This document shows, piece after piece, positions 1-55,020 of a stretch of DNA of 64,000 bases. The stretch's first letter is position 1; each line of letters opens with the position of its first letter. The stretch comes from Dicyema japonicum (lineage: Eukaryota; Animalia; Dicyemida). Under the pieces are notes generated by a model. The model saw only the letters and a list, made by a program, of their open reading frames with translations. It ran no database searches and was not told the origin of the DNA. The DNA is taken from contig RDEW01000017.1 of the NCBI GenBank assembly GCA_011109175.1, forward strand, positions 186,001-250,000, given 5' to 3'. The position numbers were made by a program, and so were the translations under genes.

Positions 1-680
1 CACGTGCAGACAACAATGGTCTCGATTGACATCAACAAGGCGTTTGACTCGGTACAGAGGAAAGATTTAATTGGAAAAGTCTCTGATTCAAAAAATCGCC
101 CTAAATTGAAGTTATGGCTGGCCAATTTTTATCTGGAAGATGTGGGAGGGTTATCTGTGGCCACCTCAGATCACGATCACGTTTACTACCAAACGGAGTG
201 CCCCAAGGTTCGCCTTTGTCCCCATTCTATTCAACCTTTTCCTCCACGAGCTGCTAGCAGACATTGACAAAGACTTCCTACTGCTTTCTTATGCTGACGA
301 TATCATCATTGCAACAAGAAGCAGTCTCACTCGCACTGAAGAAAGTGGATTGTATCGACGATTGGTGATAGCTAACCGTCTCTCGGTATCGGCTCCAAAA
401 TCATCATGCACTCTATTCACCTCCGACTGGCGGTCCAAAGAAGAACCAGAAATCTTCATCGGACATACTCGGATACCTGTCACAAGAAACCCTCAATCCT
501 GGGAGTGATACACGACAGGCTGCTTAATTTTACCTACCATGCCAAAAAAGTCTTCACCAAAGGGCTACAGAAATTGAATGTCAAACGGGCCCTCAAACGA
601 GCCCCCAATATGAATAAAGCAATCGGAACCATATACCGCCAGACAATCGCTTGTTATGACAACGGACTCCAATTATGACC
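1..680 (+). mobile_element. Degraded Vingi/Ingi-like LINE reverse transcriptase fragment
   Basis: SIDINKAFDSV, PILFNLFL and SYADDI motifs across shifted frames; similar to the intact ORF at 28073-30880. Confidence 0.8.
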
Positions 681-779
681 TGAGCGCTTGGAGCACGCAA
701 TGGAGGTTACCTCTAATGATCGCGAGTCCAATGTGTCATACAGTTATTTATGACATCAAGAAGCAATCAATCAAAGGGC

Positions 780-915
780 CATACGGTAGCCACTCTGACT
801 GTTTGGTTATTCTAGCCAGGATTGCGAGCGAGATTCGCTTAAATAGCCAGAAGCGCTTGCTGAGATCTCCAATGCTAGTAGATTTCTGATACCAAGACGA
901 CCAAGAAATTTGAAT
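780..915 (-). mobile_element. 3' tip of a CRE-like retrotransposon
   Basis: Minus strand encodes ...RFWLFKRISLAIL..., matching the C-termini of the other CRE-like copies. Confidence 0.55.
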
Positions 916-1657
916 GGTTATTGAAAGTCCATTAAAAATCTAGTTTATTGGTCAAACTCCCCTTGTCGCCCTGGGGTCGCTTAGTTAGTTGAGGAAATTC
1001 AAACTAGTCGAGGATGGTAGAGATAGTGATCTGTATTTTCAAATTGGCTTTTTCAAGAAAATCGTTTTCAGGGAAAGTTGAAAAAGTTTAAGAACCCCGG
1101 TCTAATAATTATGGACTTGATGAAAAACTAAATAGGGGTCAGATTGAGATTTTCTGATTCTAACCTCAACTGGACGCATTGGGGAAGTATAAAATGATTC
1201 ATTTTGACTTTGAATCTGATTATACTCATAGTTACTGTTAGTAACAAACATGGGGAAGGGGTTGTACCCCTGAGACCATTAATGATTAAATGAGTTGAAT
1301 TCTTACTCGTGAGGCTCGGGGGTGAGTTCAATATCTCTCAACGTAAGAAGGATCTCCTCGAAGTGATAACTTCGTGCCCAATCGATTATCGTCACCGGGA
1401 GGTCATATAGAGAAGGTAAGTGGTTCTTCTTATTAGGTGTCCTGCAAGGCAGTGACCCCCAACTTTTTTTGTCACGGACTGGTAAACGTTAGACAATTTT
1501 GCCGCAGGGGGTAGATTGTTTACTTACCTGCCATTTTCCGTGTCCTACTAAATAGCCACTAATCTCCTACAACTCAGTAAGGGGGAGGTAACTCAACGTT
1601 ACTAACAAAAATACTCAGACATTATTTAGTACTAAAAATCATTACAGTTATCCCATC

Positions 1658-2633
1658 TCAGCAAAACTGAAATAACTACCAAATCAACCTTCCATCGAGC
1701 TCCACAGGCATTGCAAAGGCAAAACGTGTCATTGGTTCATCAGCACTCCTAGTCTGCAGTTGATTGTACAGCACGTCATGGGCCTTGCATTTTCCACATT
1801 TTATCTGAGTCGAGTGTGTTCCCGATGTGGTCCTCAGTTGGGCTTCCTCGATCGAATCCTTCTTCATTTGAGCTCGCAGGGACTTCAACTCTCCATTAGC
1901 CATATCCTGAGAACTAACAAAACAGACTACCGCCGTGCTCATGATGGCAAATTCCGCGGGGAAATTAAACCAGACAATATATTTTGACGCAATTGAGGAT
2001 TCTTGGGGTCCTTCAGATTCATCACACGTCCCCGAACTCTGTTTTTATATGACATGTCCGTCTTTGAGTTCAAATTGAGGTAAATTTGTGCTTAAATCGA
2101 AAAGAAAGAGTATCTTGTTCAATAAGAGCTCCAATTTCGTCAACGAAAGCCACGTTTCTGTCGTCAGGACTTTCACCGTTCTAAGGGCATCCCCCAGCAT
2201 GGATCGACACTTCAGCCTAACGGGATCTTCCGTGGGGTCCGCAGAACATCCGTTGAAAGTCTTGACTAACTTTCTTCTCCACATGATCCTTAGAAGATCC
2301 CTTTTCTTTGTCACCTACTGGTAGAGACAGACACGTGAACCGTTCAGATGCTTCTTCCACTTGACCACGAGGGATTTGGAAACCATATTGATCGCGGAAT
2401 TAGTCGACTTTTTACGAATATTATGACGGTGAGTCCGATCCTGGTTTTCTAATATTAATATCAAAGGGTACCAAAAGAATATCAAATCAACGTTAAGGTC
2501 CTTCAGTCGATTGAGATAGGACATGACCAAATCCTCATCCTACGAATAATTCGACTAATTTAACTAGTGTGCTTTCATCGAGCAATTTTTCTAGCTCTAC
2601 TTTGATTTTCCCAATTTGAGTAATAACAGACAT
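1658..2633 (-). CDS. TCEA1: Transcription elongation factor S-II (TFIIS), spliced; several single-base frameshifts
   Basis: MSVITQIGK start; [13 protein letters not shown]; [11 protein letters not shown]; [10 protein letters not shown]; Zn ribbon CGKC...[11 protein letters not shown]...CNACGARWK|FC*; GT-AG introns of 20-25 nt plus one AT-AC intron. Confidence 0.93.
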
Positions 2634-2890
2634 TGGAGTGATCTAAAAAAGTGGGGTCTAGTAGTAAAAAATTGTTATTAGTCAATAAAATTAAAGATTT
2701 AGCTTAACTAAAGATTTTTAATTTAGAATGATAAGAGACCCACAAGACCTTGATATTTTTAAATAAATTATTTATATTATTAACATTATTATTAAAATAA
2801 TAAATAAATTACTTAATAAAAACACACGAGATAATTAATTTTTACTCCAGTCTCCTTTTGTAAGCAATTAGTTCTCTAAATTAGATAACA

Positions 2891-3077: not shown

Positions 3078-4745
3078 CACAAGTCAGAAAAAGAATCCAC
3101 ACAAGTGCAGTCCCATACTAACGATTTCCCCCAGAGAACGGAAAGATTGTTAGCCCATCCGGCCTTTTCCCGTCTCCGATGTTTAGTCCCACGGAGTCCA
3201 GCACTGCCGAAAAGCCTGCAGCTTCAAGAGCACGCATGACAATTTTGTTCATAGCAGCGTGGAGGGGTGCTCTGCCCGCACTCCTTTTTCACGAAAGCGG
3301 ATGCAGCCCTTTGGCATCGACGATCTCTCCACAACGGCATTGGTGTTCGACGCATAAATCAACTCCCAGGCGCTGTGCGATCCCAATCCGAATACAGTCT
3401 TCCTTCAAAAGGGTCCCCAGAGAGGAACACGCAAGTGATCCAGCCATGCTCCGCTTCCATGGTTGGCGACGGACACGAGGCATACAAGACGATGCAAGTC
3501 TCGTAGTGCCGGCACGACATGTGACAGAACGTCATGAACTTTTCTTCACGGCCATCCAATCGTGACATCATCAAGATACCAGAGGTTTAGTTCTGCGTTG
3601 ATAGAGCGAACAATTTCATCGATAGCCAGAGCGAAGAGAAGTGGACCAAGTGGATTCCCTTGTTGGACTCCAGTCTCTTAATAAATAATCTTGTCCACGA
3701 AAACAAGTGAAGAGTTGGTTCCGTAAGTGAGGTACACGAGTGGATAAGATACGGGGCTCGTTTGCTTGCAGTTTCGAAAATTTGATCCCTCCGCAGTGAA
3801 TTGAAGACATTGCAGATGTCAAGCTTTACCCCCATGTGTGCAGTTTGTTCGTCTTTCTGTCCAAAAAAGCACCTCGTAGCATGCACCGCCGCCTCGCATC
3901 CGTTCCTTACACCGACCCCTAGTTGGAGGGGGGAAAATTCTCCAGATATTCTCGGACAGACAATACTGCATGCGATTTTAGCTGTCAACCTTCTGAAATA
4001 GTTGCCGACCGCGATGGGGGAAACCCCACTTTGGAATTTTTTGAAGGCCAGTAGACGTGCGCTGAAAAAAAGCTCCCTTGCATGCGGAGGAATATTCCCG
4101 TTCAAAATACGCATAACCAGTTTTGTGATTGATTTGACAAGGTAGCAGCCAGCTTCTGCCCCAGCCGTGAGATCCTTGATGTGACCTGGCCGCAAGCAAT
4201 TAAGACCTCCACTGCTTGCCACGAACGACGAAATGCCGTGCCGCACTTCGCCTTCGGTGACGATCGTTCTTGCGTTTTGGTTTCAGGACTTCCATCTTGG
4301 TGAGAGAATGTACATGGAAAACATGAATGTTCTTCATCTTCGAGGAAAGGGAATTCCCACGTGTCGCACTTTCTCTTGTGTTTCGGTGTTGCTCCTTTGA
4401 CTCTATGAATGGTATGCCAAATGCGAGCGGGGCGAAACCGAGAAGTTTGAGACAGGCCTCTTGGTTGTTGGACGTGAGTGCGCCGTCGATTACGGAAGCC
4501 AGGCATGTCTGCGGGGATCCGGACGGGTCTCGGAATCTTGAGTGGAATCTTCTTGGCTTTCCTTGGCTCCGACAAAAAAAGCAAGAGGGAGTCCGTATCA
4601 TTGAAATCCAACGGCTCATTTTCATTCGTTTGATATAATGGTCTGGGTTTTCCGACCAGTGCCCATGCAGACACTGTGGAGCAAGCATGCAGCCCACTGA
4701 GACATCTTTACACACCCGAGTTCAATGCACGTTTATCTTACTGTA
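3078..4745 (-). mobile_element. CRE-like non-LTR retrotransposon (RT plus restriction-like endonuclease), degraded; longest copy in the window
   Basis: PIAVGNYFRRLTAK, QLGVGVRNGCEAAVH, KLDICNVFNSL; C-terminal CRCG...H-LSC...RH and DGKRPDG. Confidence 0.85.
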
Positions 4746-4811
4746 AAATTTTGACTAATTTAAATTTATTTGTAAAATAAGTATTGTGGAATGTGTCTTC
4801 TTAAGGATACG

Positions 4812-5050
4812 TCCTGGAGGAAAGGTTTAATCTAATCGAGAATGAGTTTTTCCAGAATTTTTGAAGAAGCACACAGAAAAGATATAGGTCTGTAAGAGGA
4901 AGGTGAGTTTTCCAGCCGTCCTGGTTTTAAGATTGGTCGTATATCGAATAATTTCCATAGGGTAGGGATGGAGTTCCTGTTGATGGAAAGATTGAAAAGC
5001 CATGATAGGCCTGTCTGCTTCAATACTATTGTAGAAATAGTATTAAAAAA
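4812..5050 (-). mobile_element. Vingi/Ingi-like RT fragment
   Basis: IPTLWKLFDIRPILKPG...SYRPISFL...SKILEKL, near-identical in motif to the intact LINE. Confidence 0.75.
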
Positions 5051-5594
5051 ATTCTGAAAATAAAAAAAAATTCTAGACTGCTTGAGTAGGACGATTTTTG
5101 GACGATCCACAAAAAACTACATTGAGTTTCGGAAAAACTATAATGTCCCGAGATTCTGCTCAAAGACAAACTTTAGTTACAGCAGAAAAAATGAGGAAAA
5201 ATATTTGGATGCTCGAAATTCAGTTATTCTACTGATGGATTGTGATTTAAATCCATCGACGAGAAAAATGTTGCAGTTTCAACTGTAATTTACAATTCTG
5301 ATTTTAGGTATTAACGAATTCTTAAAATCGGTTATTAGTCATCCATTAATATGAAAGATTCAATCACAACTTCATTAACCTAAATAAAGCATTATAATCC
5401 CAAGATTATTAAATTTTTACAAAAAAGTGGTTAAATTTAAAAATTAGTGAATAATGAAATTTACTAATAAGAGCCTTAAAATAAAGTGGTTGATTTATTT
5501 ACATGAAAATACTGGTGGAATAATTCCTATAAAATTTATTTTATTTCACATAAACCCTAATCTTATCTTTATCATTAGAGCACAGTCTCTAGTG

Positions 5595-53581: not shown

Positions 53582-55020
53582 CTAATCTCTATATTTCAGC
53601 AAAAAATCGAGATGTTTACTCTTCCTTCCATGGGTAATAGTAATCATATCCACCGTCTAAACAACTCCCACATAATATACCTCCTCATAGAATCGTCCCT
53701 CAACAGGAAGTTCTAAATACGCCCGACATTTCACTATTTTTAAAGCCACAATAGAGAGCATGCAAGAAATCCCATAAAAAATTCTAAATGACATGAAATG
53801 ATGACTTTAGCTGATCGTATATACTCTCCATAGACTCCAAGGCTCCCTTAAAATCCATATGTTCCATTTGCATCAGAGATTGGTAATATTTCAATGACGT
53901 ATAATACACGTGGTAGTAGGAAGCATACTTTGTGTCCACTTTTTCAACAGTTTTTCAATATTGTCAATAAATAGTGCATCGTAATTCTTATCACTTGAAA
54001 ATTAATCCAAAAAAACATATCGGAAAGAAATTGTTCGATTTGTTCACCCATCCGTCTGCGTTGTAGCAAATATTCGTCATCCACTTGGGTCTGACACTTA
54101 CTACAGCTGCCTGACAGATTTATAAGACCACTATGGCACGAAGGACACTTTGTAGCATTGATTTCATTATCAAAGACATCATCTGAGCATCGAGGACATT
54201 GGCAAGTGAAACAGTAGCCTTTTAAAGCGGCATGTCGGTTTGCCTTGTTGCCCAATAAGTCAATATATGTGATGCTAATACTCTGGGTGTTAGAATAAAG
54301 GTTAACCTCTTCCGAGATATTATCAACCGCAATAATTTTCTGTCTAATTCCTCTGTAAACAACGATCGCGTTTGGAACACAGGAATGATTATATTTCGAA
54401 GAGCTAGGCTCAGTTCAGAAGGATATCAACTTTAAATAGAGACCAACTCCTTGTATTCTTGAACAATAGGATTCCCAAATATGGAACGAATTGGTCCGCA
54501 ATTTACAGTAAATTTGGATAAGTTCGCTTGAGTGGATGGACTCGTAGTAATCTCTGCAGTATTTCAAGTCAGATTTAAGATAAGGAATGATTTGTTGATG
54601 TAGAGCCTCATAATCTGAATAAATTATAATGAAATAAGCAAACTTGATGCTAAATCACTGAATGATCTTCCTTGTGGGTCACTTTCTCGGTTCAAAATCC
54701 CTAATTTGTGCTTTGAGTGAATGTTCGGAATACCTTCACTAAAAATTGGAAGAATAAGCGTGTATTATCCGATGGAATTCCGTTTTCAACGAGTTTCTTG
54801 CATTCAAATTTGTGGATTTTCCATGATTTTTTCTAAGCTTAAACGTTAATACAACTTGACAAGATATGCTGCAGTATTTCACGATTTTACAGTTTTGGCA
54901 CATTTTGAGATTTGATTCCGTGAAACACCACGAACATTTCTTATTTACCAAGTCCTGGCTTAAAACATGGGCAAATGGCAGAGATTCCTCGATAACGTCA
55001 CCTGGTCTAAGAAATTTCAT
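53582..55020 (-). CDS. SET and MYND domain lysine methyltransferase (SMYD2/3-like)
   Basis: PGDVI...CSWCF...CQNC...YCSISCQ|KKSWKIHKFEC; GVGLYL...NHSCVPN; ITYIDL; YCFTCQCPRC; ITHG tail. Confidence 0.9.

Follow-up and report, generated by a model that had tools for sequence, protein, structure and literature searches.

A 26-nt AT-AC intron at an ancestral U12-type position in the TFIIS gene of Dicyema japonicum

The window analysed here is a stretch of 64,000 nucleotides of the Dicyema japonicum genome (assembly GCA_011109175.1, contig RDEW01000017.1, positions 186,001 to 250,000 of the forward strand). Positions 1658..2633 of its minus strand hold a TFIIS (TCEA) gene that, given read-supported single-base corrections, consists of seven coding exons with 277 codons plus stop. 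A preliminary description, made from the letters alone, had already identified it as TFIIS, and the gene indeed has the architecture of this family, i.e. an N-terminal bundle, a central domain and a zinc ribbon with an acidic hairpin. The spliced model, searched exon by exon, matched the Pfam domains TFIIS_M (central domain) and Zn_ribbon_TFIIS over the cut-off and, with exons searched singly, Med26 weakly, while solved TCEA1/2 chains (PDB) match the flanking exons. Fragments of LINE-type reverse transcriptase frames lie on both sides of the gene (window 1-900 and 3100-5100). Introns and elements of interest are listed in Table 1; besides intron 4, four Dicyema TFIIS introns occupy positions common to animal orthologues.

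Table 1. Introns of the Dicyema TFIIS gene and elements in or around intron 4 (window positions).
Feature	Position	Strand	Description
Intron 1	2540..2564	-	25 nt, GT-AG, phase 0, conserved position
Intron 2	2449..2471	-	23 nt, GT-AG, phase 0, conserved U2 position
Intron 3	2315..2340	-	GT-AG, phase 1; 25 nt after removal of one surplus assembly base; 22 nt via upstream AG
Intron 4	2088..2113	-	26 nt, AT-AC, phase 1, ancestral U12 position
Donor of intron 4, +1..+9	2105..2113	-	ATA kept; +4/+5 transposed relative to U12 consensus
Candidate branch region of intron 4	2096..2103	-	putative; A at 2097, +17 from donor and -10 from acceptor
Predicted hairpin	2096..2123	-	exon end pairs with intron middle; donor +2..+8 in 7-nt loop
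Intron 5	1907..1930	-	24 nt, GT-AG, phase 0, conserved position
Intron 6	1667..1688	-	22 nt, GT-AG, phase 0, ahead of the final two codons

In the raw assembly the gene is seemingly broken by frameshifts. Short-read contigs place single-base indels at 1727, 1957, 2177, 2268, 2338, 2423 and 2483, and their correction removes every TFIIS frameshift; a pseudogene, as the many frameshifts would suggest, is ruled out because these are assembly indels. The same contigs change, omit or add no letter in 2088-2113 in any of three runs, which come from one sample, probably the assembled one, and thus confirm the bases rather than a population; this rules out an assembly error at the AT-AC ends. Over window positions 1400-2800, the assembly has single-base indels at a rate of ∼0.7% (11 gaps in 1401 bases), and the frameshifts and some odd splice sites published for the D. 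japonicum genome may be assembly artefacts.

Read on the minus strand, 2113..2088 is a segment that starts with AT, ends with AC and splits a GAA codon between ...IEQ and IYLN.... The preliminary description had reported this segment, had seen no GT or GC donor and had noted that an AT-AG reading adds a residue; all three points hold, with each base confirmed by the contigs. Retention of the segment leads to a stop after 14 codons. No GT or GC donor was found near it, and the GT/GC-AG alternatives that keep the frame measure 80-92 nt and would delete a conserved helix. Two residues separate IE from IF/IY in 129 of 130 orthologous proteins, as AT-AC excision predicts, while three residues, the AT-AG prediction, are found in none. 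On the same contig lie two TFIIS paralogues without intron 4, which are codon-for-codon colinear with the AT-AC excision. These paralogues (L048, C79:380926; L049, C79:267034) have lost introns 1 and 4 precisely and kept introns 2, 3, 5 and 6, and their acidic hairpin reads ILRSDEP. From these comparisons of sequence we conclude that this segment is genuinely a spliceosomal intron, whose exact splice junction is predicted.

The AT-AG reading (23 nt, in frame) brings in a competing AG acceptor at 2091..2092 (minus strand). The AT donor could be joined partly or mainly to this AG, or both spliceosomes could act inefficiently on the intron: both acceptors keep the frame, 23 nt is a modal length among predicted introns and AT-AG introns exist. 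Such mixed or shifted use seems improbable, given that the extra residue is absent from all 130 orthologues and both paralogues and that AT-AG ends are disfavoured (PMC3584512). Still more remote is a loss of splicing in a recently broken gene covered by its paralogues, or the use of a longer GT-AG intron. The two paralogues on the same contig are compatible with such cover, but the reading frame is intact in the reads, the zinc ribbon is canonical and dN is 0.23 against one paralogue (synonymous sites saturated), and the longer intron would delete the conserved helix. Also, the 2017 run X5 contains 0.47 of the sampled TFIIS gene words and the other four runs 0.80, where the predicted share is 0.45-0.49 for fully spliced mRNA, 0.51-0.55 with the AT-AC intron retained and 0.80 for genomic DNA. 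The X5 share, which equals the spliced-mRNA prediction, is indirect evidence that the gene is expressed, and leaves the splice junction unsettled.

We compared the position of intron 4 with introns of animal TFIIS genes. The preliminary description had stated that vertebrate TCEA genes carry a U12-type AT-AC intron in phase 1 just before the IY, and camel TCEA2 does so: it is one of seven of the ten animal TFIIS genes compared with their introns that have a U12-type intron at the same codon and phase. The three others (Lottia, Macrostomum and Dimorphilus) lack the orthologous intron. The seven introns are 243-2720 nt long and end in AT-AC in camel (TCEA2), Owenia, Saccoglossus, Tubulanus and Lamellibrachia and in GT-AG in Lingula; the Argonauta gene (L082) has non-canonical AT-AA ends. 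Their branch A lies at -10 to -13 (at -10 in two and -11 in four orthologues). At this U12-orthologous position, where either AT-AC or GT-AG ends would fit, the Dicyema intron has AT-AC, and because the position is a U12 intron in seven of ten orthologues, the segment is an intron beyond chance. Judged by its position, intron 4 is a descendant of the AT-AC intron of U12 type in animal TFIIS genes. It shares with its orthologues the codon, phase 1, AT-AC ends and an A ∼10 nt before the acceptor, and differs from them in its length, its changed +4/+5 and the loss of the branch consensus.

How much of the U12 signal remains was measured with 113-117 GT-AG micro-introns, predicted in the window and at other loci, as controls. 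These predictions were made ab initio with a length prior, so that the peak in their lengths cannot serve as independent evidence and some of them are incorrect, and the signal measures were chosen post hoc, with the sequence already seen. On a small matrix built from eight canonical U12 introns, intron 4 scores 4.1 bits; those eight, here scored on themselves, reach 15.8-23.9 bits, and six of 117 controls score as high as intron 4. The ancestral donor and branch signals have thus mostly decayed, as the preliminary description proposed, and what is left is a residue, at the level of about the top 5% of ordinary introns, rather than a working consensus.

The donor departs from RTATCCTT at two positions (+4 and +5; 2.4 bits versus 6.9-10.6). 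It keeps ATA, the part of the donor read by the 48K protein (PMC3584512). Positions +4..+9 can form six pairs with U11 (one G-U) and five with U6atac. In register, such a 6/6 U11 helix recurs in only one of 117 controls, intron 2 of the TFIIS gene itself, whose six pairs are presumably due to chance; with the register left free, 14 of 113 control donors bind U11 equally well. No TCCTTRAY occurs ∼11-13 nt before the acceptor; the best site scores 1.7 bits and has its A at -10. The branch site has lost both of its conserved C residues, and the donor its C at +5. Six of seven pairs with U12 are possible at the candidate branch, four of them G-U, a pairing typical of ordinary introns (49 of 117 controls pair as well), and the U12:branch duplex is predicted at -3.7 kcal/mol versus -8.7 for a canonical U12 intron in a PLC gene described below. 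The hexamer TTTAAG proposed by the preliminary description as branch site is probably wrong and too close to the acceptor, for its A would lie at -5/-6, against -10 to -13 for the branch A of the orthologues, and intron 4 itself has an A at -10.

The hairpin predicted across the donor has a z score of about -3.2, and none of 113 control introns is as low. IRE1-type splicing, which a 26-nt intron and a 7-nt loop might suggest, is ruled out since the loop lacks CNGCNG, the consensus of the IRE1-type splicing loop, and the segment occupies a known place for spliceosomal introns.

The preliminary description had also proposed a search for minor snRNAs; U12 (85.4 bits), U11 (67.6) and U6atac (37) are all found over the Rfam cut-off, and the U12 gene lies ∼24.5 kb from intron 4 on the same contig. 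A U4atac candidate falls under the cut-off (32.4 bits), forms the two U6atac stems, in which changes are compensated, and pairs with U6atac at -35.5, against -22.9 ± 3.8 for shuffled sequences; it is likely to be U4atac. Its stem I (L008:1501-1617) is compensated, and U6atac (L005:1501-1598, minus strand) has a GGC triad with C at position 20, a possible catalytic-triplex covariation or an assembly error. Among proteins, SNRNP25 is present; zf-U11-48K matches exist in the genome, none of them assignable to SNRNP48; and the genome search gave no match for CENATAC or PDCD7, which does not imply their absence. The Y domain of the PLC gene is interrupted by a canonical 58-nt AT-AC U12 intron, whose donor and branch site are both perfect. 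Two genome pattern scans for canonical U12 introns gave 79 versus 111 and 40 versus 42 control matches, and a third 203 versus 92, many of them multi-copy; among 59 scanned loci inspected, the PLC intron alone was convincing, and one match proved to be part of the coding region of an MRPS14-like gene. When more AT-AC introns were sought ab initio, the scan returned noise. A literature search found no report of a dicyemid minor spliceosome.

Other possible relics of minor introns were seen in two genes. A SMYD-like SET gene (window 54404-54430, minus strand) has a 27-nt GT-AG phase-2 intron with a perfect U12 donor 8-mer from +5. This 8-mer and a branch-like hexamer also occur in a paralogue (L016:1501-1527), and use of the inner donor breaks the frame. 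SMYD2/3 contain a U12 intron. The Dicyema intron possibly reflects a U12-to-U2 switch via a 4-nt insertion, or chance. The gene adjoining U6atac has two such introns (L005:609-632 and 126-147, minus strand), one a 24-nt GT-AG intron with a perfect U12 branch octamer and its A near -10, the second with a near-U12 donor; these may possibly be relics of converted minor introns. Homologue searches for dicyemid TFIIS or SMYD fragments came back blank, which has no bearing on full-length kin.

Which machinery removes intron 4 can be judged from these features. The preliminary description had offered two alternatives, a miniaturised, co-evolved minor spliceosome or a major spliceosome that reads mainly length and terminal dinucleotides. 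Both machineries are kept here as candidates; a minor spliceosome co-evolved at the RNA level is unsupported, because U11, U12 and U6atac read donor and branch with sequences identical to the Rfam consensus, and because the genome contains a canonical U12 intron of 58 nt. We favour, with a probability of about one half, a switch of intron 4 to the major spliceosome with its AT-AC ends kept, because (i) the U12:branch pairing thought to drive minor-intron recognition is lost; (ii) the reading sequences of the minor snRNAs have not changed to compensate; and (iii) at 26 nt the intron sits among neighbours of 22-25 nt, versus 58 nt for the canonical PLC intron. AT-AC ends without U12 signals, as found here, are a mark of U2-type AT-AC introns.

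Such a switch might have proceeded as follows. The Dicyema major spliceosome would need little beyond GT(a)...AG at ∼21-27 nt, in agreement with a published donor reduced to GTa (PMC13644364), and would remove intron 4 with a weak U1 helix formed by the exon-end AG, the U at +2 and the A at +3. The A at +17 would serve as branch, in a place where ordinary micro-introns are A-rich; an A-rich +16/+17 is seen in the predicted ordinary introns of the genome and agrees with PMC13644364. In U2 introns a G-to-A change at +1 is rescued by a G-to-C change at the last position (PMC1557818), and an A at +1 that is best accepted with C last may let the AC acceptor beat the AG three bases upstream. Released from U11 and U12, the signals would drift and the intron would shrink to ordinary size, with the two AT-AC ends trapped as they could change only jointly. 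A direct, 'trapped' route of this kind, from AT-AC U12 to AT-AC U2, has been proposed (PMC2831892).

Several observations count against a switch: GT-AG ends were the outcome in every one of the 87 catalogued U12-to-U2 conversions (PMC2831892); U1 pairing of intron 4 is below the median (4.0 versus 5.0; 34 of 113 controls as low or lower); and the in-register U11 helix is rare among controls. The strong U2 donor apart from +1 that marks U2-type AT-AC introns, with its typical G at +5, is also absent (T at +5), but G+5 occurs in merely 20% of ordinary introns here, so that this test has little force. The G at -1 is not diagnostic, being also present in the Argonauta U12 orthologue.

Alternatively, intron 4 may still be U12-dependent, with U11 on +4..+9, U12 wobble-paired around the A at -10, and the closeness of the two sites offsetting weak pairing. 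We regard it as a tentative but substantial possibility that the minor spliceosome excises a 26-nt intron in this way, through near-adjacent and largely G-U donor and branch helices. The kept AT-AC ends and ATA start, the six-pair U11 helix and an A at -10, as in two orthologues, are consistent with it, as are the minor snRNAs over the Rfam cut-off, the U4atac candidate and SNRNP25; AT-AC introns are, moreover, mostly U12-type (169 versus 15 in human). The loss of both branch-site C residues and the +5 C, an overall resemblance no higher than the top 5% of ordinary introns, the equal U11 binding of 14 of 113 control donors once the register is free, and the unmatched CENATAC and PDCD7 (with the scope given above) argue against it, and only one base would remain as linker between the U11/U6atac helix and the U12 helix.

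With a switch to the major spliceosome as the favoured reading, intron 4 can be set beside known introns. Its closest known class, on present sequence comparison, appears to be the 'minor-like' or 'hybrid' introns (PMC11347168), with which it shares weak minor-type signals, an ancestral minor position and an exon-end AG; it differs in its AT-AC ends and extreme shortness, and its machinery is predicted from sequence. U2-type AT-AC introns of the human SCN4A/SCN5A class (PMC1557818, PMC2831892) likewise have AT-AC ends without U12 signals and a proposed U12 AT-AC origin, but their U2 donor is strong and has G at +5, whereas intron 4 lacks such a donor, is micro-sized and has demonstrable U12 orthologues. 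The major micro-introns of dicyemids and myxobolids (PMC6543705, PMC13644364) match intron 4 in length, weak signals and A-rich stretch but have GT-AG ends, and neither minor introns nor AT-AC ends are mentioned in those papers. Blastocystis resembles Dicyema in having minor introns in a compact parasite genome, but these are longer than intron 4 (mean ∼42 nt, 77% AT-AC) and were classed as minor by sequence (PMC10639083). That pan-eukaryotic survey left out introns <30 nt, found a shortest mean minor length of ∼42 nt and does not name Dicyema in its text (PMC10639083). The published D. japonicum genome has 67.5 Mb in 377 scaffolds and a mean intron of 38 bp (PMC6736024).

The case, a single intron with predicted machinery, would be new under either outcome. 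If the minor spliceosome removes it, no minor intron in the cited surveys is as short, and intron 4 would reset the lower size limit of U12 introns far below the ∼40 nt on record, and such introns would escape surveys that drop introns <30 nt. If the major spliceosome removes it, intron 4 would be an orthology-backed, direct AT-AC U12 to AT-AC U2 switch, of which there is no instance among the 87 conversions, and this would suggest that genome miniaturization expels minor introns since the smallest intron that the minor machinery can handle is larger. D. japonicum has introns of both size classes together with annotation transcriptomes, so that the size floor of minor introns is testable genome-wide in this species.
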